The position numbers and the translations under genes are program-made. Shown piece after piece: positions 28,653 through 61,960 of a stretch of 64,000 bases of DNA. The notes beneath the pieces are model-generated. The model worked only from the letters and a program-made list of their open reading frames with translations, made no database searches and was not told the origin of the DNA. The number at the start of each line of letters is the position of its first letter. Position 1 is the first letter of the stretch. The DNA comes from Oopsacas minuta (lineage: Eukaryota > Animalia > Porifera): the NCBI GenBank assembly GCA_024704765.1, contig JAKMXF010000336.1, positions 1 to 64,000 of the forward strand, in the 5' to 3' direction.

Positions 28653-28770
28653 CCCAAGGTGCTTTAAGATTTTCTAACCCCTCTCCCATTATAGAAACAC
28701 TGACTATAGGTTGTATCTTGCTCTTATAGTCTACAGAGAATATTCTCTCTAAAGTATTAGCTGTAGCCAT
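28653..28770 (-). CDS. NHL-repeat gene copy A (5' end only; rest lost in gap)
   Basis: MATANTLERIFSVDYKSKIQPIVSVSIMGEGLENLKAPW, same as copy B. Confidence 0.8.
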
Positions 28771-29176
28771 TAGTTCAGTTCTGTAACTAGAATAATGAAA
28801 CAATTCAAATAATATAACTTATCTATTTGACTATAAGTAATGAGCTCTAACTATAAATACAAATCAATACAGAGACCTATACAGAGAGATATCAAACTTA
28901 TATAATTATATGAATTCAAATAGAATACAGTATATTCTGCTTTTCTCTAACATTCATATATTTGTAATTGTAAAGTATATTTTAGGCCGAATTAGATCTG
29001 TAGCCAAATATTCGGTCTGTCGATCCTAACTAGTCCTCCCAAGCAATCCATGAAGATACTTAAGGTTTGAAATGGGATTTACATTTGATTTCCACTAACA
29101 CCGAATTCCTAGGGCTATTCCCACGAGGAATTTCTCATATACGATTCCTTCCCATTAGTAAGGCAACTACAGAGAC

Positions 29177-29802
29177 GGGGCGCATGCATTAGGATTACGG
29201 TGTTGGCATTTGGTCGAATTCCGTGTGTTGGCTTTAGTTCGAGTTTCATTGTTTACATTAAGTCGAATTCGGAGCGCATCAATTAGGTCTAAATCCAATT
29301 TTGCTATGATTTCGATAGAGCGAATGTATGATAGCTATGAATATCTCTTTTTTAAGGCCGATTAATATTTTGAGAAACACTGAATGCATCCATAAATTTT
29401 TGGAATACCTGCACAAACGTTTTAATAGCAAAAAATCCAGCGATCCCCCATTTTGTGCAAACTTTTCTAATAATTAATCCAACAAAGGTCCATCCAAACA
29501 CAAAATTAGCATGGGCTCCACATGCCCGCCCCTAGGTAGCTTAATAACGAGTAGAATGAAAACTCCCAGAGCGATAGGGTAGTGAACAAAATCCCTAATC
29601 CCTCCCAATGATATGGGTTGATAATTAATACAATAAAATGTACTACCACGTCCTCGCTTCTATAAATCCATTTCAATATCGGTCTATCGACAACATAGCT
29701 AAAATACATTCGATCTATCACAACATCTTAATTCGACCTATTACACACATTGTAAATTCGACCTAATGCCAACACACGGAATTCGACCTAATGCAGCACC
29801 CC
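29177..29802. mobile_element. MULE-type MITE
   Basis: GGGGCGCATGCATTAGG...CCTAATGCAGCACCCC; degenerate 9-bp flanks ending AGAGAC; empty site in the paralogous flank ~51230-51260. Confidence 0.75.
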
Positions 29803-31031
29803 CCCAAGAGACGTGGCAACGGGGGAGGCATAGATGTCATCCCTTTGGCTCGATTGGCAGATTATAACATTTCGCCTCGCTTCGCTCGCATCTTCCCCTC
29901 AATATTATGTAATCTCTAGAATTATCCTGATCAAATGTATCCATTTTTTCATATATAATAAATGGTCAAATATTCCAAACCACAACTAGCTAGTACTCTG
30001 ATAAAATTTCCTAATTAATTCCAAAGAATCGAGTTTGAATAAATATAAAAGTATAGTTTGGAATTAATCGCCATGTCAAGATGGAATAGAAATTCGGATT
30101 ATACCGGATAATAGATCACAATTGATTAGGTTGTAACAAGGGTAACCCATTGGTCAATTAGTGAGATTAGTCATGACTCAAACACAACGATAACCCATGG
30201 GCCATGGTTGATATATTTTAATGATAAGATAAATCAGAAATAATTGGTCAGTTACATTAACAAGATCATGATGGGCTCAGGATTTAGGACTACAATTGGC
30301 TGATAACTATTAATGGGGCGCATGCAATTGGTCAACTATTTCATTCTAACATTTGGTGGATTTCACAATAGACACTACACTGTTGATTGAATACTAAAAT
30401 GTACTAGAAATCACGTTTACTCGTCCCTGGTTCAGTTCATAACTAGTCCCAATAAAACTCCCAGGCCCATCAGGTTGTGAACTATATCCACAGATCCGTC
30501 CATTTGCAACAGTCCTCAGCTATAATCCAATCTAATTCCATTCCTCTTTTATGTTTGTAATTTCAGCGAGTATATTCCATGATGGAATTTGAAATTTGGT
30601 GGATATACGTATAAGAAAGGATGCTCAGTGTATTTGTTATGGGCAGTATGAGAAATTGGGCCTTATCATAGACTCCTTTAGAGAAGGACTGGAACGTCGC
30701 GATCTCGGGGTTTTTAACTTGAGTCTGAGAGGCTCCAATTAAAAAATTGAAAAAGCATTAGAACCCATATTTAACCTGTGGTTGGGGGCCAGACACAACC
30801 AAGAAGCTTAAAATAAGAGTATTGGCCACATTTCCCTTTGACCTTAGGCAGATATGAACTTCCTGTTTTCAACCATATTTCCTTATGTTTTCCTTATGTT
30901 TGTGGGATATTTGCATGTTTTGTGCAATTGCTGCGTGGTAATGTTTTATTTTTCTTGTTGCAAATAGTCTGCATGTTTATTGATATTGATTATGCATGAT
31001 AATGTGTTTTGTTTTCAGCTTTTGTGACAAT

Positions 31032-33610
31032 ATGCCACGTCATTGCAGCTGTTTTGGTTGTAGAGGAAATATGATGGGACGCCTTACCTAAGGGTCATAT
31101 CCTTCCCAAAAGATCCTGAGGAGAGGGAGAGATGGATATTGGCAATGCCGAATGAAAACGAAAGCTTGAGGCGCTTGAAGGAGATATATATTTGTGAGAG
31201 ACATTTCAATTGTGAATGGGTGTCAGTAAAGGGTGGAAAGCGACCAAAAGAACCGCCATCAATATTTCCTGGAGTACCGAAATCAGTTTTGAAGCAGGTC
31301 ACCTCAGCTCCACGCCCAACATCATCTACATCAGAATCAAGAGCTAAAAAAGTGCAGGCAGCTTATGAGGCTGCAGACAAGATCCAAGATTTCGACCACT
31401 TCTCCGCCAAAATGAGCTCCTATTTTCCTGGCTTTAACTTCATAAAAGACCAGAAAAACCTGTACCTATCAAGAACTGACGCTACTGGACAAACTGTCAA
31501 GCAGTTCTTTCATTTCCAACAAGTCAGTTCACCATTTGGATTCCTATTCTTGAATAGAGTTGAAAAAGATAGTATTGAGGTGTCCAAGCGACTATTTCCT
31601 TTGCAGAAGAACAGCTTACTCTCGAAATGGTCCCAGATTGGATACATAACTGACCAGGTAAACGCCTATGAGTACACAAGCCAAGAAATTCTTGAGCACG
31701 CAATAAGCCAGCTCTGCAAGATGACTGAGGCGCACGAGCTTGCTCATTTCACCTTCCTTCTGTCGCAGCTGTGCCTTATATTCAAACCTGATGGACGCCG
31801 ATTTGACACAGATACTATGATTTTCGCAGTGCAGCTTCACAACATATCACCTAGTGCATACAAAATTATTCGCCGATCCGGCTTAATCATTCTGCCATCA
31901 ACAGAAAAGGTAAAACAGATGCTTGCTAGGAGTCTGCATGACTCCAACCTCAAAACCTTGTTCGACCAGCTTAAGCCACAGCAGCGTTTGGTAAATTTAA
32001 TGTTTGACGAGGTAAAGCTGGTCGAGACATTGCGATTTTCTGGAGGGCATGTTCTAGGATACTCTCAAAATACTGCAGCGGGTGGTGACCATGAAATGCT
32101 TGCTTCACATGCTATGGTGGTTGAAGTTGCCTGCCATTTTGGTGGTCCACGCTATATTCTACGCGTTTTGCCCTGCAAAAAACTAACTTCGGATCAGCTG
32201 AAAGAACTCCTTATTGAAGCTGGTTCAGCTGTAGTTGGTGCTGGCGGTACTGTAATTTCTTTAATATGTGACAATTGCAATACCAACCGTAGTGTTTATT
32301 CAAAGCTTGGAGGACCTGGAAGTTGTCGAGTGCTATCAATTCAAGAACAATCTATGTTCTTAGAGTACGACTACTTGCACATCTTCAAAAATATACGCAA
32401 CAACTGGATTACTGTTGATAGCAAGACACTCTCATTTGTCGTAGATGGCAATGAGTACAAAGCTTACTGGAGTGATATTCAGAAGCTTTATGAGATCGAC
32501 CGAGCTACTCCTATTCGTTTAACCAAGCTGACACACACTGCTGTTTTCCCCAAGCCCCTTCAACGTCAGAGCGTACCATTGGTATGTCAAGTGTTCAATG
32601 ACAAGACTGTCGCTGCCTTGAAGACGTTCAAGGGTTCACTGGGCATCAGCGAAGGCACCATCATTCTCACCCAGACAATCAGTGAGTGGTTCAAGATAAT
32701 GATTGTGAAAGACCGTTTCTCAGCTATCCGTCTTCGCGACGAATCCAGACAGCCTTGGACAGCAGACTGTACAAGTTTCACTAGGCTGGAGGAGGCCTGC
32801 CAAATTATATCTACCTGCGCATGGCAAGGAGGTGGTGGTCGTAAGCTGAAGCTAACTAAGCAAACTGCTGAAGCCTTCACTGTGTCCACACGTAATAATG
32901 TGGATGCTGCCAAATTGCTTCTGGCGGACAAAGATTGACTACGTTCTCCTGCTATATTCGCGGATGAAGCCTTGGAAAAGTTTTTCGGCCAAGCCAGACA
33001 AAGAAGAGGTGGAAACTTTTACATTGACGTAGTTGACATTATGGCTGCAGCTAAAATTGTAAACTTGCAAACACTCAGTAAGCATGACATTATGGTAGAA
33101 TCGAGTTCTCGTGTGCATGATTGTGACAAGAATTGTACAACTTCCGAAAATCCAGCTGAGCGAAGTGAATTCATTGACGAGATCACTCCTCAAGACACTC
33201 AAGAACTCTTGAGGTCTGATGATACCCTTAAGCATAAAGTTGTTTATTTGGCCGGATACCTTGTTTATAAATTTGGTGATAGCACTAGTATGGAGGAGAT
33301 CATTGGTGATGAAGATGGTAACGAGGTGTCATCTGAGTTCCTAGATAATTTGAATAGAGGTGGACTGAGTGTGCCGACTATGTCAACCGTCTTTTTTGTA
33401 CACAATGCCTATAATTTGCATGACCAGACTAAAATGCGTTGCCGCTTTCATTTTGCTGAGCTATTATCCTTTGTAGATGCACCTTTAATAGGTAATAAGG
33501 CTGCATGTACTACTTTAGCTAACATTCTATTGAAAGCTCATGTCCTCAATGTAAGTGACAAAGAAAAGTCTTTGGGATGCCTCAGAAGGCAAGACAAGCT
33601 CTCTAACTAA
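31032..33610 (+). pseudogene. THAP-domain P-type transposase, small frameshifts near 31070 and 32935-32950
   Basis: MPRHCSCFGC..FPKDPEERERW..ICERHF (THAP); FDEVKL, ICDNCNTN, DYLHIFKNIRNNW, DEALEKFFGQARQR. Confidence 0.88.
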
Positions 33611-33674
33611 CGATAGGCATAGACAATGTTGTAATAGACATAGTGTTGTGATATGCATATAATGTAATTACATA

Positions 33675-33844
33675 CAGTAGAACTCGGATAAGACGTCCCC
33701 CCTCGGGAAGTCTAAAAAAGTACGTACTATCCGAGTTGTATTTACATAGAATCCTATGTAATAATGAATTTTGGTTCATAAAATTTAGTACGTACTAAGC
33801 CGAAATACGTCTTATCCAGGGTACGTGCTAACCGAGTTCTACTG
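33675..33844. mobile_element. pogo/Tigger-type MITE (copy 2), inside the P element
   Basis: Same TIR as 5817-6002, TA TSD. Confidence 0.88.
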
Positions 33845-34287
33845 TATATGACAATAAATATCAAATTTGTGCTGCTATACACTACTGCGTCTCATTACAA
33901 TCAGCCATCTCTCACCTTTATTAGTTAGACAAAAAAAGGGCAAAAATTACCAAAATTCACCCATTTGACCTTGAAATATAACCTTTTGACCTTTAAGATG
34001 ACCGCAGGTGGTTTTGAAAATGGCGCCATTGAACTCGCCGTCCTCAAAATCTCCTATGTGGACCCGAGATCGTGTCTCTAGCCCTTCTAGAAGTCATTTT
34101 AGCCCAGGACTCAAGTTAATCCTTCAGACTCAAGTTAAAAACCCCGAGCATGGGAGGATTCAGTCCTTCTTTAAAGGAGTCTATGGGCCTTATACATAAT
34201 GCCCAGGCAATATGCAAAATGCTACTCTTATTGGACAATATGCATAATGTCCAAAGACAACATGCATAATTCTACTCTTATTGTATG

Positions 34288-34910: not shown

Positions 34911-35086
34911 ATTGCATGATGCTACTCTTAGAGTGCCTCGTAATAATTATGCGACTTTTAATTAATTCAATTAATGAAAACTGATCGTAGATATAGGATA
35001 TTCTATCATGCTAGATTCCGCTATATGCATTCCGGTCGGACAATCTACGTCGTAAGTGGTCCTCCTGAACCAATTACGTCAACTTT

Positions 35087-35314: not shown

Positions 35315-35356
35315 GTAGCATGTATGGTGAGCAGTAAATCTCAAATCGGACTATAG

Positions 35357-36797: not shown

Positions 36798-37254
36798 CTG
36801 ATAAAGTTAATGGGCTAGGGAAATTCACGCTTTTGTGAGAATGTATACAGAAAAGTTTACATATCTTCATCAAGTTTTGTTAAACTTCACACTCGTTAAG
36901 TTATGCGGATAATTCATTGCTGAAATTCGTTGCTGACTCACACTCGTTCTAGGGAATTGAGTTCTAGGAACAAGATTGTTCCATAACTAGGAGCTACAGC
37001 ACTCTCAAACAGTAAAGGGCTAACTTATCCTGTTTACTTACTAGTTAGCTACGCCTCAGGTAGCTACTTCACAATGACGCCAGTACGGATGTTATACCTA
37101 CCCACCCTTTATGATAATTCAAGTGGATTTTCAAAATATTTGTAAAATGCCATGTGAGGACTAGTTAGTAGGGCAGGACAGAATAATCCGCGACAGTACT
37201 GATCACACTGAATTACTTTAACGATTAATTCTAAGAATGTCAGAGCATAGCAGA

Positions 37255-37419
37255 ATATACTGTATTCTATTTGAATTCCTTTAATTATATAAATTTGATA
37301 TCTCTCTGTATAGGTCTCTGTATTGATTTGTATTTATAGTTAGAGCTCATTACTTATAGTCAAATAGATAAGTTATATTATTTGAATTGTTTCATTATTC
37401 TAGTTACAGAACTGAACTA
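37255..37419 (+). promoter_or_regulatory. Conserved NHL 5' block (putative promoter/leader); also at ~28771-28950, 49690-49860, 53689-53855, 59303-59470 and orphan 50843-50990
   Basis: Near-identical non-coding sequence before every NHL ATG that retains its 5' end; TATA-like tatttata and acceptor-like ttattctag. Confidence 0.6.
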
Positions 37420-38275
37420 ATGGCTACAGCTAATACTTTAGAGAGAATATTCTCTGTAGACTATAAGAGCAAGATACAACCTATAGTCAGTGTTTCTATA
37501 ATGGGAGAGGGGTTAGAAAATCTTAAAGCACCTTGGGGAGTAACAGTTGATAATTCTACAAGAGATATCTATGTAGCAGATTACTGGAATAATTGTGTGA
37601 AAGTATTCGATTGTAATGGTAAGATTATGTTTAAATTTGGAGATGAGGAAGGAGAAGGAAAGATGAATGGTCCAATTGGGTTAGCTATGTGTAGAGATAG
37701 AATTCTGATTGCCCAAAGAAGTGATTCTATTTTGAATTATCAAGTGAATGGAGAGTTTATTTCTAGAATAGGAAAACCTGGGAAAGGAGAATTGGAATTT
37801 TCTGATCCTCTTGGGCTGACATTCGATGAATCTAACGGAGAGGTATACATATGCGATTCTAATCATAATTGTATTCAGATACTGTCCAAGGAACTTACCT
37901 ACAAGACACAGTTTGGACAAGATTATCTCAACTTTCTTCTTGATGTTAAACTTACAAAAGAATTCATTTATATTCTAGATGAATCTAATCCTTGGCTTCA
38001 TCTGTACAGCTACAATCTTATTCTATATAAGAGTATTATTTCTAGACGAGATGAATTACAGCTGGATAATCTTAACTTCCTCTGTCCTATTATAACAATA
38101 TTCTTATTACAGATTATTCTTATTTCTCTCGTCCTGGCTGTATTTCTATTTTCAACTCTCAATTTGATTTGATACACAAGATATCTATAGCAATTCTGGC
38201 GGTAGTACAGTGGATAACAGAGGAAGAGTTATTGTAGTTTGTGATGGAGGTGAACATACCCTCAATATTTTTTGA
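37420..38275 (+). pseudogene. NHL-repeat gene copy B (late frameshift ~38075)
   Basis: NHL motifs PWGVTVD..IYVADYWNNCVKVF, DPLGLTFD..ICDSNHNCIQIL. Confidence 0.85.
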
Positions 38276-39717: not shown

Positions 39718-41064
39718 CAGTCTGTAACATAATTATTGAGAATTTTCGATATATTCTTAAAGAACCAATTTTCTTTCAATCATACTTTACAATATTATTT
39801 ACATGTAGAATTAGTTAGACATATGCTTTTCTTAACTATTTTGACCATTTATCAACTTAGATTGCATTCTTCAATATTTAATTTATATGAAGAAGCTATT
39901 GACTACGTCATCATTTTTCTCAATTCTTGAATAACAACTTGTAAATTCAAAATATTCTAATTTTTAGCTTGTAATCCCTTGATATGAGTCAACAGCGAAA
40001 GAGACTACAGATAGAAACATTACTTATCAGTTCTGGTCTATCTGTTGTTCAGATTTCAAAGAAACTTGGCGTCAGTTTGGCCACGGTTTATCGAGTAAAA
40101 TCAAGAAAACAACATAATGTTGGTCTTGAACATCGTAAGGGAGCTGGGAGGCCATCTAGCCTCAGATTATCTGTTAAGAGAAGCGTTACTCAACAGATCA
40201 GACATAAGCCCTTTCTTTCTTTACGTACTTTGGCATCACTTGCACCCGGTAAACCCTCACACGAAACAGTCTGGCGCGCGATGAAAGATCTTGACTATAA
40301 CAAAAAACAACCGACAAATAAACCAATGATTAACGAGAAAAATCAACTTGCAAGGCAACAATGGGCTAAGAAGTACAAATATCCCAAGAAAGCGTGGTAC
40401 CAAACAGTATTTATTGATAAAATGTCGATTTGGCTTGCTCGAGGAAGGATCAAAATGTGGACAAAATCAGGCCAAAAACGAATAGTCCCGACAACTAAGC
40501 ATTCTCCAAAGATCAATGTTTGGGCGGAGTTTAGTTCAATGGGAACATTTCCTATATGTATTTTCACCGAAAACATGAACAGTCAAATGTTTGTTGATAT
40601 TCTAGAAGGGCATTTGTTAACTCAGGCAGAAATCTTCCACCAAAATGAATAGCGTCTTGTCATGGACAACGACCCAAAGCACACCTCTAGACTTGTCAAG
40701 GCATATCTTGTTGAGAACATCCCAAATCATCTTCCTTGGCCTTCTCAGAGCCCTGATATTAACCCAATAGAAAATGTTTTCAGTTGGGTAAAACGAGAAC
40801 TTATAAAATTGGCTCCTCGGACAATTTCAGAGCTAAGGAAGAAGCTTGAAATTGTATGGGAAAAGATAACCCCTGAATTTCTGAAGCCATATTGTGATTC
40901 GATGCCACACAGATGCCAGATGGTAATAGAATCTGGTGGTTTTGCTATAAATTATTAACTAGTGATGTTTTTTTGAACCAAAATCACATGAATTAGTACT
41001 CATTCAGGAAAATTGGTTCTGTTCTAGCTCATTGAATAATTCTCAATAATTATGTTACAGACTG
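39718..41064 (+). mobile_element. Young Tc1 (DD34E) transposon, one nonsense codon at 40650
   Basis: Perfect 27-bp TIR CAGTCTGTAACATAATTATTGAGAATT, TA TSD; ORFs 39984-40652 and 40662-40958 are in frame; DNDPKH..WPSQSPDINPIE. Confidence 0.95.
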
Positions 41065-42443: not shown

Positions 42444-43427
42444 TCAAAAACTGAAATCACATCCTAGTGAGTTACCCTTTGATTCGAGCATATTTTCTGT
42501 TCGTATTGCTAGTTGTTTCATCTGTTCTGAGATTACACGACAGGGAACAAGAATCAAAATTTCATCTCCAAGTGGAATCACTGTTTTTACGAATATTTTC
42601 AGATCGTAAATAACCTGACTTTCAATTTTAACTACATTTGCTTTAGCATGGATCCGTGAGATTAAAGTTAATCCCTCTTTTAGTATGTTACTCATGCTTG
42701 CAACAATGTTCATTCTTTCCCTGTCCGAATTTATTGTTTTCCGTGCAAATTCTATTTCTTCTTCTAGATATATGATATGACTTTCTATATGCAAAATTTG
42801 TTTCTTTTCTTCGTGAATACTTCTTCTGAGGTTAGATTTTAATTCTTCTTGACTTTGTAAATGAGAAACATGTTCTTCATACGTTTGGTGTAACGCTTTT
42901 ACGTTGGCAGCAAGAACTGAATCAGCGATTAGACCCGAGAAGCCTACGATTGGAACGAAAATACCGATTATTGTCGTGGCTATGTTTGTAGTGTTTCTTG
43001 CATTCTCAGCAGATTCCGTTTTCTGTTTCAGTGTATCTAGCTCTACTTTTGTATCTTCAATATTTCCTCTCAATCTTTCCATCTCGTTTTCATTCTCATC
43101 TAATTCACGGTGTACTTTCTCCATAATTCTCGTTTTTTTGTTAATTCTCATGCTAAGATTTGCAATTTCATCTTTCATTGTATTTTCTGAAAGTAGGTAC
43201 TTTGATAATTCATCTCTTATCATATCAATACATTCATCCAACGTCTTTCCAGCTTGTTTAAAATATCTTTCAGCAAAAATGGCATGTCTTCTAAGTGTAA
43301 ATTTAGTTGATACGCGTTCAGATAACGATAGAGTGAGAAAAATGGCTTCCACAGAATCCAAGCCTTTTTGTAATATGCCAAAGAAATCGCTTTTCGACAG
43401 TCTGTTTTTCAACTCCAATGTTGTCAT
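42444..43427 (-). CDS. 327-aa coiled-coil protein with central hydrophobic segment, function unknown
   Basis: Intact ATG-stop intronless ORF in AT-rich DNA; heptad-rich aa ~60-145 and ~178-260; hydrophobic aa 149-177. Confidence 0.75.
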   Translation of the reverse strand: MTTLELKNRLSKSDFFGILQKGLDSVEAIFLTLSLSERVSTKFTLRRHAIFAERYFKQAGKTLDECIDMIRDELSKYLLSENTMKDEIANLSMRINKKTRIMEKVHRELDENENEMERLRGNIEDTKVELDTLKQKTESAENARNTTNIATTIIGIFVPIVGFSGLIADSVLAANVKALHQTYEEHVSHLQSQEELKSNLRRSIHEEKKQILHIESHIIYLEEEIEFARKTINSDRERMNIVASMSNILKEGLTLISRIHAKANVVKIESQVIYDLKIFVKTVIPLGDEILILVPCRVISEQMKQLAIRTENMLESKGNSLGCDFSF

Positions 43428-43445
43428 GATTCTCTAGCAATAAAA

Positions 43446-44073: not shown

Positions 44074-46405
44074 CAGGGTTCTATCTAGGATGTTAAATTT
44101 GGGGGGAAGCTTAGAAATCCTTAGTACCCAATTATCACAATATTACAACCTTGAAGTAAACACCAAACATTCAAGTTAATTCCTAATAATGAAGATTTCT
44201 ATTGTTAGTAAAACATGAAAGGGCCGCTCACAAATTGATTTTTCTAATTTTCATTCCTTTATAATGCTCCAATACTGCCTCTAAATTTTCATCAGATAGG
44301 TGATCAGGACCTTCAATACATATGCGCATACAATAATCAAGTGTCTCTTCACTCATTCGGCTGCGAAGTCTCGTTTCTATTAATTTCATATTGCTAAAAC
44401 TCCTTTCGACTGTGACTGTTGTCACTGGTAATACTTCCTAAATAGCAGCTATCTTTGCCAAGTTTGGAAATGCAGCATATCTCTCCGTTCTCAGCAGTCT
44501 TGAGAGTACAAATTGTATGGACCTACCTTTATACTGTAGGAAGATTTAGCGTCGAAACAATTTCCACTCTGACTCAGTTTCTTTAGCTTCGATGTCAGGT
44601 TATGATATACCTTCATCTCCCCCTACAGTGATCCTTTGTTCTACACTATAAATATCCGTGAGTGTCTTAATCTGTTCCATTCCGTACTCTGATAATTCTT
44701 CTTCTGTACCAGGAAGATGGCGAGGGTCAAAAACAGACATGGCTGAAATGAGTTGAGTAGACTCCATCCTGACATTAATATGATCTATGACACTTTGGAA
44801 GTATGGTCGATACACCTTGTGAAGAAATTCACTCTTCTCTTCTTCCAATACCACGATGTGTTTCTCCCCTAATTGAGCATCATCAGTAAAAACCAAAGAA
44901 TGTTCCTTGAACCATGTGCTGCTTGTTACATCTTCTTTGAGCTCCAACAGCCGTTTAGTAGTACTAGCAACCATCGATGGCACACTCGCAAGATCAATAT
45001 CCTTGGCTTGTAGGCTTCCTTGCAATTTCGCTACGATATAAAGAACATCTGATAGCATGTAGATACATGCGACAGTCTTGTACTTCACTAAGAGAGTTGC
45101 AATTCCATGTGCTTATGCATCCCCAGTTTCTGCGTATATATCTTCAAATGTACTGACCAAAGCTGGTAAACTCCTTCGCACAACAGACACAGCTCTCTCA
45201 CGGGCTAATCACCGAGTATCACTAGGCTTCTGCATTTTGATTTCAGGAGCCTGAAGTTCAGCTTGAATCTCAGCAAGTTTCTCAGCTTTTTTGGAAGAAA
45301 AGTGAAAAGCCTTCCAGATTGTTAATAATATACCCAAAACTCTCTTCACTACTGTATGTTCTGATGCAGCATTTAAAGCACCAAGTTGAAGCTTATGGCA
45401 GCGACAGTGCATATAGATAGAGCTTGGTGCATGTAATCTTAGCCGTATTTGAACACCACTTCTGTGACCCGACATAGTATTTGTATCATTAAAATTAAGT
45501 CCACGCATCTTATCAAAACCAATGTTTTTGGATTGAAGAAAAGTTCGAAGGTAACAAGCGATTGCTTGAGTAATTTTCTCCTTCGCATGCAAAATGCCAA
45601 CAAAATGTTCTACTGGTTTATTATCTTCTATCCAACGTGCACATACTGACAACTCTTCTTGTGATGTTACATCCGTACTTTCATCTACCATTAATGAATA
45701 CAATGGGCTAGCACTGAGACTGGTGATGATTCTCTTCTTGAATACATTGCTAATACTTGAGAGAAGTTCCACTATTGTGGTATATGATTCATATGTCGCA
45801 TTGTGTAGACACTTCTCTTTGTGAGATTTCAGTGTGATGTCCCCATTCTCAATTTGTAAAGTAATGAGGTTTTTCAAATGTAGTTGTATGGGGGATATGA
45901 TGCTTAACCAAGAAATATAAGGATCGAATAAGCTTTTTCATGATGTCACGGTTCTGTTTCTTCTCCTCCGCAGTGGCTGCTTCCAATTGTTCCATTACAT
46001 TACCATGTTCCTCTGTTGATTGAAACATAACCATTATTTCGATCGCTGCTGCGTGCCAATCAGATTTCTCATGTTGTATTAGCAAACTTTCCACCTACAC
46101 CCAATTGTTTATAGGTCTTGTCACCCATGCACCTCTCGCTTGTACCGGTGGTTTACCATGGACCTTACAAATCGTACACACCATACCATTTTGGGATGAA
46201 TCGTAGTCCATCCAAGTATACTCATTCTTCCAAGTAGGATTATAAACTAAGTTGTCCTTGTAGGTTCGCATTTTTTGGCTGTTTTAGAAGCGCATGGAGT
46301 AGAAACAATCGCATCTTCCTCTGGTGGTTGTGGTTCAGACTCAGATATATTGTTGCAATCAGAAATATTTCTTTTAGTTCCTCGAAAGATAACAAATTTA
46401 TCCAT
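44074..46405 (-). mobile_element. hAT (ZNF862-type) transposase pseudogene with one terminus
   Basis: ATG 46405; HEKSDWH, LMVDESTDV..EELSVCARW, HCRCHKLQL, MQKPSDTRW, VERSFSNMKLI.TRLRSRM; TIR-like CAGGGTTCTATCTAG at 44074. Confidence 0.88.
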
Positions 46406-48846: not shown

Positions 48847-49689
48847 TCAATATATATTGAGATGATGTCCATCACAAACTACAATAACTCTTCCCATGTT
48901 ATCTACTTTAATACCGGTAGGATGAGCTATAGATATCTGGTGTATCAATTCTAATTGAGGGTTGAAAATGTAAATATAGTGAGAAGTAAATTTTGTAGTA
49001 AGAATATTGTTAGAATTCTCAATACAGAAATACCATGGATAAATCAGCTGTAGTCCATCTCCTCTAGAGATAATACTCGTATGTAGAATAAGATTGCAGT
49101 TGTACAGATGAAGACAAGGATTAGATTAATCTAGAATATAAATGAACTCTTTTGTAAGTTTAACATCAAGAGGGCAATTGAGGTGATCTTATCCAAACTG
49201 TGTCTTGTAGGTAAGTTCCTCGGACAGTATCTAAATACGATTATTATTAGAATCACATATGTATACCTCACTGTTAGATTCATCGAATGTCAGCCCAAGA
49301 GGATCATAAAATTCCAATTCTCCTTTCCCATGTTTCCCTATTCTAGAAATAAACTCTCCATTCACTTAATAATTCAAAATACAGTAGCTTCTTTGTGAAA
49401 TAGGAATTCTATCTCTACATATAGCTAACCCAATTGGACCATTCATCTTTCCTTCTCCTTCCTCATCTCCAAATTTAAACATAATCTGACCATTACAATC
49501 AAATACTTTCACACAATTATTCCCCCAATCAGCCACATAGATATCTCCTGTAGAATTATCTATAATTACTCCTCTAGGTCCTTTAAGATTTTCTAACCCC
49601 TCTCCCATCTTATAAACACTGACTATAGGTTGTATCTTGCTCTTATAGTCTACAGAGAATATTCTCTCTAAAGTATTAGCTGTAGCCAT
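48847..49689 (-). pseudogene. NHL-repeat gene copy C (premature stop 49366, later frameshifts)
   Basis: Collinear with copy E to the terminal stop. Confidence 0.85.
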
Positions 49690-50169
49690 TAGTTCAGTTC
49701 TGTAACTAGAATAATGAAACAATTCAAATAATATAACTTATCTATTTGACTATAAGTAATGAGCTCTAACTATAAATACAAATCAATACAGAGACCTATA
49801 CAGAGAGATATCAAATTTATATAATTAAATGAATTCAAATAGAATACAGTATATTCTGCTATTTATATTATTATTAGAAGTTCTGAAATGGGAATTACTT
49901 TTGATTCGATTCTCATTAACATAGAGAATTCACAAGATACCATAGGATTCCTTCTCATTCCTAAGTCACCCAAATGCACGTCTCCGCGGGGGACATGGTG
50001 GGCTATACCCCCCTGGCAAGATGTCGTGCGCCAAGACATCTCTTTGGCCCAATTTGCAAACTATCAAATTTCAGCTCCCTTTGCTCGCATAACAAGAAGA
50101 AAAGTCAACTCATGGGAATATACAAATGTAGTTTAAGGTCAATTATCATTATTAGAAATTTATCTAATA

Positions 50170-50842: not shown

Positions 50843-52872
50843 CAAATACTTGAAATTATCTATTTAACTATAAGTAATGAGCTCTAACAATAAATACAAA
50901 TCAACACAGAGACCCATTCAAGAGAGATATCAAATTTCTAAAATTATAGGAATTCAAATAGAATACAGTATACTTTGATCTTCTCTGACATTCATATATA
51001 TTTAATTGTCAATTTATATGTCAGGGCGAATTAGATCTGTAGCTAATATTCGGTCCGTCCGTCCAAACTAGTCCTCCCAAGCAATGCATAGAGACACTTA
51101 AGGGTTGAAATGGGAACTACATTTGATTCCCATTATCACCGAATTCCTCGGAGTGTTCCCACGTGGGATTTCTCACATGGGAATCGTTCCTATTTCCCTA
51201 CAAGATTCCCTTACGGTTCCTTCCCATTACTAAGGCAACCCCACAGACGTGGCAACGGGGATGCATACATGTCATCCTTTGACTCAATTAGCAAACGGTA
51301 ACATTTCGGCTCGCGTCACTCGTATCTTCCTCTCAATTATATGTGATCTCACCCTGTGGCGTCGTTGGACTTGAAATCAGGGGGGTGCACAAATTCAATC
51401 TAGTGTACAAGAAGTTCTGGATGAGGGTCTACGGGCGCTGTAAACAATTGCAATCAGTAAGTTCCAGGACCGAATCCCTTCGCAAGAAATAACGTTTGAA
51501 TTGCAATTACCCAGAAAGTTGACATTTTCTGGTACCTTGGAGTAGTGATGTAGCTTAAAGAATATTTGGGAGCACGGCTCCACCAGGCACATATAGCAAG
51601 ACACCAATGATCTCACCCAAATATGAGGGAGCTTTAAATACCTAAGTAATATTTTTCGAGTATTAACCTGATCAAATGTATCCATAAATGGTAAAATATT
51701 CCAAACCAAATGTGTTTACACAGTTATGAGAAATTGTATCAATTTAAAACCTACGAAGCAATAGAAAAGTAATTAATGTGGTAGCATATATTGCTTGGTG
51801 TCCAAGGACTACCCCCCTACTCCACTAGACCACTGGAAGACTTAAAGCGCTTCCCAGACCCCAGCTAGAGTGCCGTCGTGTTAAATGTGACTGGGTCCGC
51901 CTCCAATATTTCCGAGTTCTACATTATTCGTCCAAGGGACCAGAAAAATCTCAACTTTCTGGACCAATTGCAAGCCAAACAAAATATCTTGGAATGGTTT
52001 CCCTCCGCGACCTTACTGATTGTATACCACGCGCATAGACCATCATCAAGAGCTTGTTGCAAACCAGATTCAAAGCCACACGACGCCACGGCCCAGCTGG
52101 GTAGTTATACCAAACTAACAATCTATAGATACACCACTGAGCATGCCTCTTGCTAAACCCATGAAAACACCTTGCCCCTCGTCTTACCCTCTGCTAACTA
52201 TGAATCCCCTGGTAATTTATTGCCTCCTAGGTCCAAAATCCTAGCGATGTCCCTATAATGAAATTAGGTTGGAAAATTGATGCATAAGGAATAATTAGTA
52301 ATCTCACCAATCTCATCTCCTAATTGTACTAGTGGCTCTGTATTTTTCAGGTCTCGAATTCATCACGAATTTTTCTTTGTATTAAAGCGATCCCTGCTTG
52401 GGCAGATAATTATATTAGTTTCCAATTGATAGTTCTACGTCTGCAATACTTACTATTTATTCGGGTTAAATAAAATGGTGATTATTTTCAATGTGATATT
52501 ATTGCAATAGCGATTATTCTAAATGAGATATTACACAAAATCGAATTTTCAAAATGTATATAAAGCAGTCAGTAATAAAGATTTAAGATTTAAATACATT
52601 TTCAAGATCCTAGTCCTTTACTTATCAGCCCCATCACTTTATGGGGCTGACATAAATTTTTAATGTGGCTCTAGCTGCTTCTCTAGCGCCGCCACCAATT
52701 GCATGATGCTACTCTTAGAATCCCTCGTAATAATTTTGCGGCTTTAATTAATTCAATTAATGAAAACTGATCGTAGATATAGGATATTCTATCATGCTAG
52801 ATTCCGCTATATGCATTCCGGTCGCACAATCTACGACGTAAGTGGTCCTTCTGAACCAAGTACGTCAACTTT

Positions 52873-53266: not shown

Positions 53267-53334
53267 CTTCATAGTACTATTAGCAAAGAAAAACGTAAGC
53301 CAAGTAGCTGAGTATTTATAGAAGAATAATTAGC

Positions 53335-53688
53335 CAAAATTCTAGAAATAAACTTCCCATTCACTAGATAATTCAAAATACAGTGGCTAATCTGTAAAAT
53401 TAGAATTATATCTCTACATATAGCTAACCCAATTGGACCATTCGTCTTTCCTTCTCCCTCCTCATCTCTAAATTTAAACATAATCTGACCATTACAATCG
53501 AATACTTTCACACAATTATTCTCATAATCTGCTACGTAGATATCTCCTGTAGAATCATCAATTGTTACTCCGCTAGGTTCGCCAAGATTTTCTAGCCCCC
53601 TTCCCCTTTTACAAACACTGACTATAGGTTGTATCTTGCTCTTATAGTCTACAGAGAATATTCTCTCTAAAGTATTAGCTGTAGCCAT
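53335..53688 (-). pseudogene. NHL-repeat gene copy D (3' truncated)
   Basis: Homology ends after GKFISRI. Confidence 0.85.
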
Positions 53689-53999
53689 TAGTTCAGTTCT
53701 GTAACTAGAATAATGAAACAATTCAAATAATATAACTTATCTATTTGACTATAAGTAATGAGCTCTAACTATAAATACAAATCAATACAGAGACCTATAC
53801 AGAGAGATATCAAATTTATATAATTATATGAATTCAATTAAAATACAGTATATTCCTCTATGCTCTGATATTCTAATATTTAGAGAAGTTATTCAAGACT
53901 CTAGGGTCCAGCTCAAAAGTTCATCCCAGAACCTAAGGTCCTTAGTATCCGCTCCATGAATCCAGGACCTTAAATTTACTTGTGCAAATTTAATTATTT

Positions 54000-55643: not shown

Positions 55644-55802
55644 CTGGACGAGATGACATCACAAGATCGGTATGCTTTTAGCCTGTTTCATTACAAAATA
55701 TCAAAATGAAATTTACCAATATTCATCTATAACTATTAATGTTATGATCAAATAATCATTAATGCATATAGTATACAACCAATTTCACATACTTTGATTT
55801 CG

Positions 55803-57000
55803 GGATACAGACTTGTCGTGACAGGACCTTTCGTGACAGAGACTTTTAGTGACAAGATGGGTATATTTATACACATGGATATAGGTAATACTTTTCTATT
55901 CAATAAGTGTTGTGGTTACAGAAACAAGAGTACAAATAACCTAAATCAAAGAACTTTGAATCTTGAAGAGTAAAATGGTAAGAAATTCCTCTTAAGAATT
56001 CAAACTTTGGATTCAGCAAGTAATTTTGTAACAAATTTTGTAATGCCTTTTCTCTTTCTTCAATATATTTGCGTTTCGAAGGATTCCCCCACTTATATTA
56101 AACGCTTGTTTTACTTCAACCAACCCTTGTTCTCCATATAGAAGGATGGTGGCAGGATATGTGACAAGGAAATGAACGGTGCCAGGCATTAACTACATTA
56201 TGTGTTTGGTAACCCATGCTGAACCATGAAGTGGTTGTTCCACATTTCCATTGGAAATATTGGTGAGGACATGAAGGGGGGAATTAGCGATATGCCTACC
56301 AATATAAGTAGCTTCAAAGTATATTGCCTGGTCGTAAGCTTTCACAGGTAGTTGTAAGAAAAGACTATTGAAAAGTTCAGGTATGTCAGTAGAAATTGCA
56401 AACGCTAGTACAGATAGCATTCGCACTTTTATTGCAAATTCTACATCTAGCATATCTCTATGCTGCTAGTCCTAATTGTTAATTGTTGAACTTTACACCA
56501 GACATTTACATAAATGAAAGAAACAGCCTTGAAGCTTTTTAGTTAGGAAGTATTGTGAAAATGCATTAATGGAGGCTATTGCACAATCCACAATTAGATG
56601 TGTCGGGTAAGCGATTGGACATAATTCATGTACTTTGTTCAACATGTTTCCATATGTATATTCGGCCTAGTTTGCTAGCAATTCGTAGAGACATGGGAAA
56701 TACGACCAGTGAATATCAGATCCGGCCCTCCTTTCATAGCATGTATCATGTACAGTTGATAAAACAAACTGGGCACGGTTTTAAAGGTGCTATCAGCTAA
56801 CTAGACAGTTGCAGATGAGAGTAAATCCACATTAGCTTGAGTTCCGAAGATTACGATCCTCTGATTTCCACTTTGCGTGCCAGAATCGTAGAGTATAATT
56901 GTTGGCCCTTTTGTTTTAGTATAGCTTTCTGGTATCTCGAGATACTGTAGTGATAGTGGTTCAGGCGGAACGTTTTCGGCTATATTTCTGTTCTTCACTA
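55803..57000 (-). mobile_element. Degenerate MULE transposase relic
   Basis: ILYDSG..RIVIFGT, KGCFFHL, VRMLSVLAF..YFEATYIG; subrepeated TIR-like end near 55803. Confidence 0.75.
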
Positions 57001-57624
57001 TTAATCCTTCAAGCTATGTATTTTGGGTGCATGTACAGCTCGGCATTCACAAGAAATTTAGGAAAGAATTAGAGAATCAAGCAAAAATTGGAAAAATATG
57101 TACCATTTTTTGCAAATAATTGTCTAAAATTGCAATTTATGTATTTAAAACATTGAAATCCTGAATGGAAATCATTCCAGAATCTCAGGAATTATCACAA
57201 AGGGTGGGTAAACATGACATGAGTACATGAGTGATTGTGAAGCAGCTTCCTGACGCGTAGCTAACTAATAAGTAAAATGGGGTAAGGTGGGCTGTATCCC
57301 TAGGTATGGAGCAATCTACTTTCTAGAAGCTAATTCGCGAGCGCATCATAAATGTCTAGGATGACACCAGGGACAGTATAATGTACGGATATATGGTCAG
57401 CGAGCCTGAGGACTTACCTTCCAGAACACAAAATTAGTAAGAATGATAAATTACACATTAGTATTAAGAGGAACAGATAATGAATTGAATAATTAAGTGA
57501 GCAAACTCGAAATCATTGGGAAGGGGCGATAATTTCAATTCCATGGGCTGAGTCCCCGTAGCTACCATAGCCTCGCCACCCCAAGTAAATGAAGCTTGCT
57601 AGTAACCAATAGATATTAACTCAC

Positions 57625-58013
57625 CATCATAAACGGTACAATCTCAACAAGATCTAACATTACAGATTTTTCCTGAGCAGATCTAGTCTGTGCTGAGCTA
57701 TGCATCAGAGCTAGTTTATCATTTGAATAATTCAGAAATTTCTCCACTACAGAATGGAATAAATCCAAACTCTGAAAACAGATAACTCGGAATTGACAGA
57801 GGCCATCTTTAGCAGAGACAGTCTTCCCGTGATCAACACAAAGTTGACAGAATTTGATTATCACTAAACTCTGTTCATTCAATTTATCTCTGTGACGTTT
57901 ATTCCTGAGAACATCGAATAACTTCTATAGCATCGGCGTATTTCTCTACATCAATGAACTCATCTGCACGCTGTATAGCAGATTCAGGTTTACCAGAAAC
58001 CCGGTTTAGACAT
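57625..58013 (-). pseudogene. EIF3A: eIF3 subunit A first exon, frameshifted copy
   Basis: KPESAIQRADEFIDVEK..DVLRNKRHR..IIKFCQLCVDHGK..AKDGLCQF aligns to the eIF3a N-terminus; ends at donor ATG|gtgagt. Confidence 0.8.
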
Positions 58014-58453
58014 CTGAACTAAACTCAAGAGGTAATTACAAGTATAGTACAGTAGTCAAACTTGACATAAATTGATGGCAACCCCTGTATACATAATAGG
58101 GGCGCGTTAGCCAACTTTGTATAAGAAATAGCTTAACTTTAATGAGGAGCGTTCACATCTCATTTCATTTTTGGCCAAACACTAATGTAAAGGAGAGGAG
58201 CTAATGATATCTGAATTATGTGGAATATCGTATCGAGTTTTTAGAATAGCAATTTAACGTTATTCGCAAAACTAGAAATCGAGGGATAGTTCGGGCTCAT
58301 AGAAACCTTTTAAAATGAAGGAATCCTCTATAAGAGGTAAAATACAACCAGGAATAATACAAAATATGAGAAGAGTATACTTTGTTCAAATGTAAAAAAG
58401 AACTCAAAAGGAAACACAAACAAAGATATGAACACTAGTAAATAGAAAAATTA

Positions 58454-59302
58454 TCAAAAAATATTGAGATAATGTTCACCCCAATCACAAACAACAATAA
58501 CTCTTCCTCTGTTATCTACTGTAATACCGGTAGGATAACCTATAGATATCTTGTATATCAAATCAAATTGAGAGTTGAATACAGAAAGAGAGTTAGAATA
58601 ATAATCTGTAATAAGAATATTGTTAGAATTGTCAATATAGAAAAAATATGGACAATTCAGCTGTAATCCAATTCCTCTAGAAATAATACTCCTTTGTAAA
58701 ATAAGATTGTAGTTGTACAGATGAAGACAAAGATTAGATAGATCAAGAATATAAATGAATTGTTTTGTAAGTTTAACATCAAGAGGGTATTTGAGGTTTT
58801 CTTGTCCAAACTGTGTCTTATAGGTAAGTTCCTTGGACAGTATCTGAATACGATGATTATGAGAATCGCATATGTATACCTCTCCGTTAGATTCATCAAT
58901 TGTCAGACCACGAGGATAATCAAATTCCGATTCTCCTTTCCCAGGTTCCCCTATTATAGAAATAAACTTCCCATTCACTTGATAATTCAGAATACAGTCG
59001 TTTCTTTGTGAAATAAGAATTCTGTCTCTACATATAGCTAACCCATCTGGATGGTTCATCTTTCCTTCTCCTTCCTCATCTCCAAATTTTAACATAATCT
59101 TACCACTACAATCGAATACTTTCACACAATTATTCTCACAATCTGCTACATAGATATCTCCTGTAGAAATATCAATAGTCACTCCTCTAGGTCTTCTAAG
59201 ATTTTCTAGTCCCTTTCCCCATGTACAAACGCTGACGATAGGTTGTATCATTCTCTTATAGTCTACAGAGAATATTCTCTCCAAAGTATTAGCTGTAGCC
59301 AT
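58454..59302 (-). CDS. NHL-repeat beta-propeller protein, copy E (intact, 282 aa from ATG)
   Basis: Six blade-like repeats, no stops; no RING/B-box/coiled-coil seen. Confidence 0.9.
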   Translation of the reverse strand: MATANTLERIFSVDYKRMIQPIVSVCTWGKGLENLRRPRGVTIDISTGDIYVADCENNCVKVFDCSGKIMLKFGDEEGEGKMNHPDGLAICRDRILISQRNDCILNYQVNGKFISIIGEPGKGESEFDYPRGLTIDESNGEVYICDSHNHRIQILSKELTYKTQFGQENLKYPLDVKLTKQFIYILDLSNLCLHLYNYNLILQRSIISRGIGLQLNCPYFFYIDNSNNILITDYYSNSLSVFNSQFDLIYKISIGYPTGITVDNRGRVIVVCDWGEHYLNIF

Positions 59303-59645
59303 TAGTTCAGTTCTGTAACTAGAATAATGAAACAATTCAAATAATATAACTTATCTATTTGACTATAAGTAATGAGCTCTAACTATAAATACAAATCAAT
59401 ACAGAGACCTATACAGAGATATCAAATTTATATAATTATATGAATTTCAATAGAATACAGTATATTCTACTATTCTTTGACATTCTCGTATTTAGAGAAG
59501 TTATTCTCAGGACCCTGGGGTCTTGATAGCAAAATCCAAGGATCCTAGTGTCCTAACAATATTTCTGGGATCTCAAGGTTCCAGAGGTATCAAGTCAAAA
59601 TTTTATCCCAGGACCCTATAATTTCTAATGCAAATTTAACTTTAT

Positions 59646-60040
59646 TCGAGCCTTTGGCTCGTCGATTCGCGATGAACTCGGCGCATAGCGCCTCGAGCTA
59701 TTCAACGGACAAACAAACAGACAAATAACAATTCATATTTACGAATATGGATGTTGTTTACAATATTCAGACTCAGCATCCACTTTAGTTGTTGAAAGTA
59801 TGATTTGATCCCAATTTTGAAATTTGTGTACTAGAAAACAACATACATTTACATATGATTAATCCAAAAGTGTGAAAATCGGAATTCGCATGTTCGATAT
59901 ATTTTGTGAAGTTTTGTTGAATTCATATTACTACCTTTAATACACACGAAATTATGCTACAATTTCAAATTTGCATACCCTAAATCCTTTCCTTGACAAC
60001 GGATAAACAAACAGACAAATAAACAAACAAACAAACAACA
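59646..60040 (-). mobile_element. Family H Helitron-like repeat
   Basis: Hairpin end plus (CAAA)n end. Confidence 0.55.
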
Positions 60041-60554
60041 ATCTATATTATGAAATCTCAATGATTATTTGTCTGTTTGCTTGTTTCTTTCATTGTAACG
60101 ATTGACTGGACATTCTTTTCTTCACCTGCATAGAGATATTGATGTAGACATCAATGATTTGAAATATGAGTTTGGACGAATCAATCCAACGAGACTGCAA
60201 TTGTCTGACATTTTAGCTGATTGAGAAACATTAAAATAGTCATTACTAAGTTTGATTTATTATCAAAGTATAGCTAAATAAATTTCAATGTCAATCCATA
60301 TTAATTAGTATCCTTAAACACTCTTTACCAAATAACAATTTGAATTACATAACTCTGCGAGTTATTTATATTGTTTAAAGAAATTCAATAATTTGTACGA
60401 TAATCACATTCCGTAAAACATTCAAATCTCCTCTATTGAATGATATTAATCTCGTTAATTTTTTGACAAGTGAAAGTGTGTCAAATTAGTGACTGAAGTA
60501 AATATGCAAAATATATCAAATATGCTGAATCTGATTTCACACATTTGAATTCAA

Positions 60555-60807
60555 CATATCACAAAAATCTGACACAAGAAATTCTGAGTCAAAACTGACA
60601 TATAATAGTATTAACCTCTACAGGCATATCTTGCTGCATCCAACATCCACAGTTTATAATCTGATTCTGCACACGCTGGACATATGTCTTGTGACCTTCA
60701 ACCATTTTCGTTGATACAAAAGGATCATGTTATCCATTCAGAATCAAACTAGGCAACTGAATTTTATCATAACCAATTCCTTCTCTCACAAATCAGTAAA
60801 TACATTC
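60555..60807 (-). pseudogene. Epoxide hydrolase terminal exon, third copy
   Basis: Near-identical to 36545-36797. Confidence 0.75.
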
Positions 60808-61157
60808 CTGATAAAGTTAATAGGCTAGGGAAATGCACGCATTTGTGAGAATGTATACAGAAAAGTTTGCATATCTTCATCAAGTTTTGTTAAACTTCAC
60901 ACTCGTTAAGTTATGCGATAATTCACTGGTGAAATTCGTTGCTGACTTCACACTCGTTCTAGGGAATTGAGTTCTAGGAACAAGATTGTTCCATAACTAG
61001 GAGCTACAGCACTCTCAAACAGTAGAGGCCTACCTTCCCCCTGTATACCTACTAGCTAGCTACACGTCAGGAAGTTACTTAACAATGACGCCAGTACGAA
61101 TGTCACACTTACCCTCCTTTATGATAATTCATGGGATTATCTAAAGATTTCTTGGCA

Positions 61158-61960
61158 AGATACAACCTATAGTCAGTGTTTGTAATTGGGGAAGGGGATT
61201 AGAAGATCTTAATAGTCCAGAAGGAGTGACTATTGATAATTCTACTGGAGATATCTATGTCGCAGATTACTAGAAAAATTGTGTGAAAGTATTCGAAAAT
61301 AATAGTCAGATTCTGTTTAAATTTGGAGATGAGGAAGGAGAAGGAAAGATGAATCATCCAGAAGGGTTAGCTATATGTAGAGATAGAATTCTAATTACAC
61401 ATCAAAGCTGTATTCTCAATTATCAAGTTAATGGGAAATTTACTTCTAGAATTGGGAAGCCTGGGAAAGGAGAATTGGAATTTTATGATCCTCTTGGGCT
61501 GACATTCGATGAATCTAACGGAGAGGTATATATATGTGATTCTCATAATAATCGTATTCAGATACTGTCCAAAGAACTTACCTACAAGACACAATTTGGA
61601 CAAGATGACCTCAGATTTCCTCTTGATGTTAAACTCACAAAAGAATTCATTTATATTCTAGATCTATCTAATCCTTGTCTTCATCTGTACAACTATAATC
61701 TTATTCTACATAAGAGTGTTGTTCCTCGAGGAGCTGGATTAAAGCTGAATACTCCCAGGTTCTTCTATATTGACAATTCTAGCAATATTCTTATTACAAA
61801 TCATTCTGATATCTCTTTTGGCTCTATTTCTATATTCAACTCTCAATTTGATTTGATACAAAAGATGTCTATAGATTATCCTACCGGTATTACAGTAGAT
61901 AACAGAGGAAGAGTTATTGTGGTTTGTAAAGGATATAAACATTTCCTTATTTTTTGGTAA
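61158..61960 (+). pseudogene. NHL-repeat gene copy F (5' block and ATG deleted; stop ~61270)
   Basis: Begins at gcaagatacaacctatagtc (SKIQPIV); ADY*KN. Confidence 0.85.

Follow-up and report, generated by a model that had tools for sequence, protein, structure and literature searches.

Several protein scaffolds, namely LRR, Ig, B30.2, FReD and WD40, are known to carry germline-encoded recognition repertoires that evolve under diversifying selection. Vertebrate TRIM5/TRIM22 and the teleost finTRIM proteins with their B30.2 domains represent lineage-specific tandem expansions of a TRIM-derived recognition domain with birth-and-death turnover, and positive selection in these proteins is concentrated in the surface loops that bind viral targets. 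Here we describe a family of genes encoding an NHL propeller alone in the glass sponge Oopsacas minuta, starting from six copies (A-F) found in positions 1-64000 of contig JAKMXF010000336.1 (assembly GCA_024704765.1). This whole stretch of 64,000 nucleotides is referred to below as the window. Among described propellers, the WD40 domains of the HNWD/NWD proteins of Podospora anserina (het-d, het-e) are under selection on the top platform, where two of the positions belong to the d-a loop and two to the b-c turn (PMC1805685). In the TRIM-NHL protein LIN-41, the RNA contacts determined for DrLIN41 are C563, R564, R581, S582, R611, K628, and D629, and further Y658, W660, R676, R707, F722, R752, and R770 (PMC5908797).

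The region under study belongs to a large family of intronless genes, amplified in this lineage, for single six-bladed NHL propellers of ~282 amino acids (aa). New copies arise by segmental and tandem duplication, at the DNA level, of a unit that includes a 5' island, the coding sequence, and sometimes a fragment of eIF3a. Recombination or gene conversion transfers sequence between copies, many of which die. Selection keeps the scaffold (omega, the dN/dS ratio, ~0.36) and favors change at ~10-12% of codons (omega ~3), almost all of which lie in the D-A loops (motif xxPx) and B-C turns (motif AD-xx-N) of the six blades, on one face of the propeller. Taken as a whole, a lineage-amplified NHL propeller family whose selected top face makes it a germline-encoded recognition repertoire is, in our opinion, a likely explanation of these data.

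Results

The NHL Propeller and Its Variable Face

Copy E, the sole intact gene among the six copies in the window, is 100% identical to protein P0001. Copies E, B, and F are recognized by the Pfam NHL family (PF01436) with 112.7, 72.8, and 62.5 bits, respectively, at a cut-off of 20. The AlphaFold2 (AF2) model of P0001/E, built on a 93-sequence alignment, has a predicted local distance difference test score (pLDDT) of 92 and a predicted template modeling score (pTM) of 0.90, and comprises 24 strands in six blades, with an N-terminal strand at residues 23-25 completing blade 6. The best solved matches found by Foldseek are the NHL domains of Thin, TRIM71/LIN-41, TRIM2/3, Mei-P26, and Brat (template modeling score 0.84-0.88, ~25% identity), and phmmer gives E-values of 5e-42 to 1e-21 for metazoan TRIM-NHL domains and 1e-7 for bacterial PknD.

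In the phmmer alignment, the LIN-41 contacts map to P0001 positions 36, 37, 55, 56, 84, 100, 130, 132, and 148, and D629 falls into a one-residue insertion directly after position 100; the aligned TRIM71 chain shows the same contact residue identities with a constant offset of 543. The mapped positions are those of the xxPx and AD-xx-N motifs. The reading of the window made from the sequence alone (below, the sequence-only reading) had stated that the variable positions form the RNA-binding face in LIN-41/TRIM71, and both the alignment and the published residues (PMC5908797) agree with it.

We compared the family in two assemblies, that of Oopsacas and a sister assembly (ENA ERZ25766962). Peaks of per-site entropy are periodic and occupy the same blade positions in 32 Oopsacas and 61 sister proteins (Spearman 0.45, p=3e-15), so chance does not account for the pattern. 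Assignment of loops to faces by the strand topology, and not the measured geometry, of the AF2 model placed nearly all loop sites of high entropy (>=1.6) on the top face:

D-A and B-C (top) loops, 78 codons: 34 such sites in Oopsacas, 24 in the sister assembly
A-B and C-D (bottom) loops, 50 codons: 0 such sites in Oopsacas, 2 in the sister assembly

From 7 to 12 different residues occur at a variable site. The residues enriched at sites under selection (see below) are R, Y, W, H, N, and G, with Arg the most enriched.

Codon Tests in Oopsacas

The codon set consisted of 21 intact Oopsacas coding sequences (20 short, one long form) from the window contig and eight further loci, aligned on copy E. 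The models were fitted with our own pruning-likelihood GY94+F3x4 code, whose log-likelihood (-7456.42) equals that of iqtree exactly, and marginal likelihoods were used throughout. Fitted globally, GY94 gave an omega of 0.60 and a kappa of 1.90; the tree is star-like, with 13% of its total length in internal and 87% in terminal branches. By region, the Nei-Gojobori (NG86) dN/dS ratios and maximum-likelihood (ML) omega values are as follows:

Top loops: NG86 dN/dS 1.30; ML omega 1.18, not significantly above 1
Strands: NG86 dN/dS 0.46; ML omega 0.36
Bottom loops: NG86 dN/dS 0.39; ML omega 0.37

Strands and bottom loops are thus under purifying selection, with likelihood-ratio test (LRT) statistics of 32-93 versus omega=1.

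Diversifying selection at the variable sites and their confinement to one face of the propeller, both proposed in the sequence-only reading, are borne out by the site models. With a single tree, M2a was favored over M1a with an LRT of 247, ~10% of sites having omega 3.5 and 21 sites P>0.9. When the alignment was split into six segments of 47 codons, each with its own tree, the LRT was 180, 12% of sites had omega 3.0, and again 21 sites had P>0.9, 15 of them common to the two fits. The 21 sites found with segment trees comprise 17 in D-A or B-C loops and four at the opening residues of A or C strands; bottom loops contain no such site (Fisher p=1e-4 for top versus bottom loops). The gap-free codons 23-229 alone yielded an LRT of 104-111. 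In cross-validation, where the 30 most variable sites were chosen from one half of the sequences and tested on the other half as a class with its own free synonymous rate, omega was 1.8-2.4 and the LRT 4.8-10.7 in all eight splits. Finally, a site-wise test with free synonymous rates identified 17 sites as positive at p<0.1, of which 13 belong to top loops, and 60 as negative.

The PHI test detected recombination among the paralogs (p<0.0005), in line with the exchange suspected earlier from blades shared between copies. Conserved codons lying no more than two codons from a hypervariable site have a synonymous rate of 1.42 versus 0.85 for those farther off (LRT p=0.012), an elevation that may be due to multiple hits, small conversion tracts, or local mutability.

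Replication in the Sister Assembly

In ERZ25766962, the genes are regularly arranged head to tail, up to seven of them on one strand within 21 kb (locus L010), in contrast to the scattered, pseudogene-rich copies of mixed orientation in Oopsacas. The dominant form there, 409-412 aa in length, keeps an N-terminal helical region (loci L010, L011, and L012). For 16 intact paralogs, omega was 0.65 overall; the regional values were 1.27 (top loops), 0.44 (strands), and 0.45 (bottom loops). M2a was again favored over M1a (LRT 113), with 15 sites at P>0.9. Top loops account for 14 of these and bottom loops for none. Nine of the 15 coincide with sites selected in Oopsacas (Fisher p=9e-7), so the diversifying selection is replicated in a second set of genes.

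The Six Copies in the Window

A tblastn search with copy E recovered exactly six NHL copies in the window, all at the places noted earlier, with 74-84% protein identity to E. In the DNA self-comparison they appear as repeat units of 1.1-1.5 kb, 80-92% identical and in both orientations; the gene unit is ~1.4 kb long and intronless, and the window holds one orphan 5' flank besides the six copies.

28653-28963, minus strand: copy A, 5' flank and first ~39 codons, remainder lost in a gap; tblastn match 28657-28803
37230-38272, plus strand: copy B, pseudogene, ATG at 37420, by three-frame translation; tblastn match 37387-38272, high-scoring segment pairs in three frames
48850-49863, minus strand: copy C, pseudogene, ATG at 49689, 5' flank included, by translation; tblastn match 48850-49722
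50843-51194, minus strand: orphan 5'-flank relic of a seventh unit, by self-similarity and comparison with E
53338-53882, minus strand: copy D, truncated, ATG at 53688, by tblastn and translation; tblastn match 53338-53721
58454-59302, minus strand: copy E, NHL-only six-bladed propeller, 282 aa plus stop, by open reading frame (ORF) and translation; tblastn match 58457-59335
61160-61960, plus strand: copy F, pseudogene, by tblastn and translation; tblastn match 61160-61948

The copies and motifs of the family described in the sequence-only reading are present. Their state is worse than was assumed, E alone being intact, and the decay of four of the five assessable copies (B, C, D, and F) had been overlooked, as had the cut in A, the orphan flank, and the extension of the cluster beyond the window. 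Copy A is cut by an assembly gap (N-gap 28411-28652). Copy B has two reading-frame changes near its 3' end, at about 38090 and 38195, and copy C is full length with four in-frame stops. Homology of copy D is lost beyond about residue 128, and its junction peptide recurs on another contig (L004 16582-16932), which means that the broken copy was itself duplicated. In copy F, other sequence takes the place of the 5' end ahead of residue ~19, and an in-frame stop interrupts the AD-xx-N motif of blade 1 ('ADY*KN'). The orphan flank ends ~45 nucleotides (nt) short of the expected ATG and is followed by unrelated, G+C-richer sequence. Since most of the window copies are pseudogenes, it is the wider family, and not these six, that provides the signal of selection.

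The motif variants listed earlier were all found in the translations: KAPW (A and B), KGPR (C), GEPS (D), RRPR (E), and NSPE (F) at xxPx of blade 1; YW, WG, YE, and CE in ADxxN; NGPI, NHPD, and NHPE in blade 2; SDPL, DYPR, and YDPL, the last common to C and F, in blade 3; and NCPY, NTPR, and IYPW in blade 5. The multi-base codon changes after Pro (tgg, aga, agc, and gaa) are seen in the DNA.

Family Size and Turnover

At least 43 Oopsacas paralogs are annotated; the best 120 of 778 significant hits to copy E comprise 43 Oopsacas proteins and 77 from the sister assembly. The cluster extends beyond the window, with 15 NHL copies in contig positions 28-114 kb (87 kb). The sampled loci hold 31 copies, 30 of them assessable, and at least eight are fragments or pseudogenes. 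Clusters that are both tandem and dispersed, the broken copies (at least eight of 30), and the star-like tree all fit the birth-and-death evolution suggested before.

Gene Structure and Origin of the Short Form

The copy E ORF starts 22 residues ahead of the first strand, with stops upstream. The cluster contains one intronless long-form paralog, a single ORF of 413 aa at contig positions 103544-104785, and relatives in ERZ25766962 are single uninterrupted ORFs of 409 aa (e.g., L002 10001-11230). These 409-413-aa relatives carry a helical region of ~125 aa, a putative coiled coil, ahead of NHL. In pairwise alignments, the short genes and the 413-aa form have the 5' flank, the ATG, and the first codons in common; then ~390 nt are missing from the short genes, and the alignment resumes at '...GAGAGAATATTCTCTGTAGA'. 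The gap is bounded by GAGAGA microhomologies. The alignments thus show the 282-aa NHL-only form to be derived from a 409-413-aa gene for the helical region (putative coiled coil) and NHL by an in-frame deletion of ~390 nt, and because of this deletion the helical region is absent from all six window copies.

Pfam detected no RING or B-box above threshold in the short form or in the N-terminus of the long form, the latter having no hit of any family above threshold, and no signal peptide was evident on the N-terminus on inspection by eye. No effector or signaling domain is present; the propeller alone is encoded. The homologous ATG and flank, the upstream stops, and the lack of RING and B-box even in the long form uphold the earlier description of a stand-alone NHL protein.

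Each ORF is preceded by ~190 bp of strongly conserved sequence ending in ttctag/ttacag, 10-16 nt before the ATG. The NHL ORF was considered as a terminal exon with this site as the splice acceptor, and this was rejected for the coding sequence, because the intronless 413-aa gene begins with a homologous ATG and flank and the 409-aa sister genes are single ORFs. The site could still serve a 5'-untranslated region (5'-UTR) intron or be a trans-splice acceptor.

59303-59402, minus strand: conserved 5' island of copy E, positions -100 to -1, by paralog p-distance
57622-57921, minus strand: eIF3a N-terminal pseudo-exon ~530 nt downstream of E, by tblastn (89% over 100 aa)
62488-62633, plus strand: eIF3a N-terminal pseudo-exon ~530 nt downstream of F, by sequence comparison

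The 5' island as a whole spans positions -100 to +66 (59237-59402 in E), running into codons 1-22, and is also found ahead of copies A-D and of the paralogs in loci L003-L009. Its p-distance between paralogs is 0.027-0.045, whereas the value for third codon positions of the remaining gene is 0.12-0.17; the dead copies retain the island with a p-distance of about 0.02. Its predicted RNA structure is not unusually stable (fold z-score -0.64). The island could be a gene-conversion anchor, a shared promoter or 5'-UTR, or a trans-splice acceptor.

An eIF3a fragment lies ~530 nt downstream of many NHL copies, within the duplicated unit, with further fragments at contig positions 65647-65960, 71801-71878, 81070-81363, and 105302-105615. 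Capture of this exon piece from a neighboring gene shows that the duplication occurs at the DNA level and not by retroposition. Protein models P0011, P0015, P0021, and P0028, with a PF22591 tail, are mis-splices joining the NHL ORF to the eIF3a pseudo-exon. In addition, the record names 'Serine/threonine-protein kinase PknD', 'PEP-CTERM domain protein', 'Cell surface protein', and 'PKD domain-containing protein' of these sponge proteins are misleading, since they were transferred from bacterial NHL hits.

Genomic Context

The window is eukaryotic in character, with G+C of 31-42% and few long ORFs, and the G+C of the NHL genes (32-41%) is similar to that of the remaining window. Its positions 60498-64000 match locus L009 (record positions 60498-81358 of JAKMXF010000336.1) exactly. 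DNA-transposon ORFs of at least six types (hAT, FLYWCH, Tc5/pogo, mariner, P-element/THAP9-like, and Tc1) are interleaved with the NHL copies:

1364-2038, 6411-7163, 10561-11190, 23733-24737, 31139-33610, 39984-40652, 44600-45877: DNA-transposon ORFs

The mariner-type transposase ORF at 23733-24737 adjoins a degenerate tandem array (24926-26128) with a period of 58-59 bp, a higher-order unit of 176 bp, and ~20 copies at 65-74% matches. An uninterrupted ORF of 272 aa at 15965-16783 (minus strand) encodes a CSN2-like PCI-domain protein resembling COP9 signalosome subunit 2 and is probably an ordinary host gene or exon at the cluster edge. The ORF at 42444-43427 (minus strand) encodes 327 aa with long coiled-coil segments and a central hydrophobic stretch; a Pfam search gave no family above threshold, and its identification as a GVIN1_C protein like the 327-aa gene in L006 was dropped, BLASTP similarity being nil. 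A GVIN1/URGCP-type large GTPase gene (1244 aa; L006 16729-20545 and L001 1-1205) lies within the NHL cluster at about 90.9-94.7 kb of the contig, and OTU-domain genes adjoin NHL copies in L005 and L002. These GTPase and OTU-domain neighbors may hint at a defense-gene neighborhood.

Discussion

Several points weigh against a selected recognition repertoire. Just one of the six window copies is intact. The top loops as a whole class have an omega not significantly above 1 (1.18), and at the hypervariable sites defined in the sister assembly, fitting an elevated synonymous rate of their own (2.15) brings omega in Oopsacas to 0.95; the support for omega above 1 thus comes from the site-mixture and cross-validated tests. 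For M1a/M2a and the site tests, we used our own code, not PAML or HyPhy, with fixed branch lengths and kappa, grid optimization, and empirical Bayes. Recombination inflates M2a tests, a problem that the segment trees lessen and do not remove. None of the protein records retrieved with copy E showed a transcript-derived source. Finally, the net charge of the selected sites varies from -4 to +7 among the 21 paralogs, which makes a uniform RNA-binding role unlikely; as judged from the residues, the pattern of the variable face seems to fit diverse ligands better than uniform RNA binding.

The omega values of 1.18 and 0.95, together with the death of four of the five assessable window copies, favor relaxed constraint, where the duplicates are decaying and their least constrained loop residues drift neutrally with omega near 1. 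However, the 21 intact ORFs are strongly purified elsewhere (omega 0.36-0.37, LRT 32-93 versus omega=1), the neutral mixture M1a is rejected (LRT 104-247), the cross-validated hypervariable sites have omega 1.8-2.4 in all eight splits, and the same sites recur in a second lineage, so that we find relaxation improbable. We give a similarly low probability to an artifact of concerted evolution or local mutability, in which conversion tracts or mutable loop codons shuffle the variants and a wrong tree mimics selection. The PHI result, the YDPLG common to C and F, the raised synonymous rate near hypervariable sites, and the 5' island homogenized among copies all speak for such processes, but the segment trees still give an LRT of 180 with a similar set of sites (15 in common), errors in topology matter little in a tree with 87% of its length in terminal branches, the excess is specific to nonsynonymous change, and shuffling cannot yield 7-12 residues per site.

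It is rather unlikely, if less so than either of these, that the proteins are endogenous Brat/LIN-41-like post-transcriptional regulators, with every paralog adapted to its own host mRNA or to transcripts of transposons; diversification would then follow host or transposon targets and not pathogens. RNA-binding TRIM-NHL domains are the nearest structural matches, the selected positions are the LIN-41 RNA contacts, the cluster is very rich in transposable elements, and Arg is the residue most enriched at selected sites. At the same time, the variable face of several paralogs is neutral or acidic, down to -4, regulators of host mRNAs are normally conserved and single-copy, and an effector domain is absent. 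Origin from a bacterial symbiont or by recent transfer, as an NHL 'eukaryotic-like protein', could be suspected from the lack of introns and from the bacterial-style names of several annotated paralogs (PknD, PEP-CTERM protein, cell surface protein). We give it almost no credence: the neighbors are eukaryotic transposons and sponge genes (CSN2, eIF3a fragments, PI3K, and GVIN/URGCP GTPases), the G+C of 32-41% is as in the remaining window, and the best solved relatives are metazoan TRIM-NHL domains, with E-values of 5e-42 to 1e-21 versus 1e-7 for PknD.

Under the recognition-repertoire explanation, every paralog would bind in the cytosol with an individual specificity, and together they would constitute a repertoire encoded in the germline. 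The likeliest targets would be non-self or selfish molecules that change fast, for instance viral, transposon, or microbial RNA or protein. Because the short form has no effector or dimerizing domain, it would act by sequestering or masking the ligand or by recruiting a partner via another surface. A more specific proposal, possible by analogy and on balance doubtful, is that the NHL-only propellers are the cytoplasmic non-self repertoire of a syncytial animal, a counterpart of the fungal HNWD het genes. If so, the propeller array would detect foreign molecules in the shared cytoplasm of the glass-sponge syncytium, coming from viruses, transposons, or allogeneic cytoplasm after tissue fusion, and the family would be the first of the immune-type diversifying receptors to use the NHL fold, as well as the first described from Hexactinellida.

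Full-text literature searches found no description of an NHL expansion or of an NHL family under diversifying selection, and neither glass-sponge genome paper mentions NHL or TRIM families. The genes described here provide a candidate intracellular-recognition family in an early-branching, syncytial animal with a barely described immune repertoire, and show that residues holding RNA in LIN-41 can take on a new role as a hypervariable surface. They also offer a natural series of more than 40 closely related propellers, differing mainly at ~25 surface positions, that is useful for studies of specificity and for binder engineering. In addition, annotation errors in public records are flagged, namely the bacterial-style names and the fused NHL-eIF3a gene models.

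Comparison with Known Systems

Like the TRIM-NHL proteins (LIN-41/TRIM71, Brat, Thin/TRIM32, TRIM2/3, and Mei-P26), the sponge proteins have a six-bladed NHL propeller with an N-terminal strand closing blade 6, and the long-form relatives keep a helical region ahead of NHL, as TRIMs do. The variable xxPx and AD-xx-N residues correspond to the LIN-41 RNA contacts C563/R564, R581/S582, R611, K628/D629, Y658/W660, and R676 (PMC5908797). In contrast to TRIM-NHL proteins, the sponge family is devoid of RING, B-box, and filamin domains, and its dominant Oopsacas form also of the coiled coil. Moreover, TRIM-NHL genes are conserved and single-copy, whereas the sponge paralogs number dozens and are clustered, intronless, and fast-evolving, with many pseudogenes, and their predicted binding face is not uniformly basic. 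The recognition domain of TRIM5, TRIM22, and finTRIM differs as well, being PRY-SPRY/B30.2 with RING, B-box, and coiled coil kept, whereas the sponge genes encode the NHL propeller alone.

The nearest verified mechanistic analogue would be the HNWD WD40 family of Podospora. In both cases, the propeller scaffold is kept and a few positions per repeat are positively selected with the same topological placement; both families exchange sequence between members and contain pseudogenes, and the fungal proteins are cytoplasmic, as is suggested for the sponge proteins. They differ in the fold, WD40 versus NHL, and in the way in which variation is produced: the fungal repeats within a gene are near-identical and reshuffled as units, whereas the sponge blades are diverged and variation resides between whole-gene paralogs. 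Finally, the fungal proteins carry NACHT and HET effector domains, in contrast to the sponge proteins, which have none.

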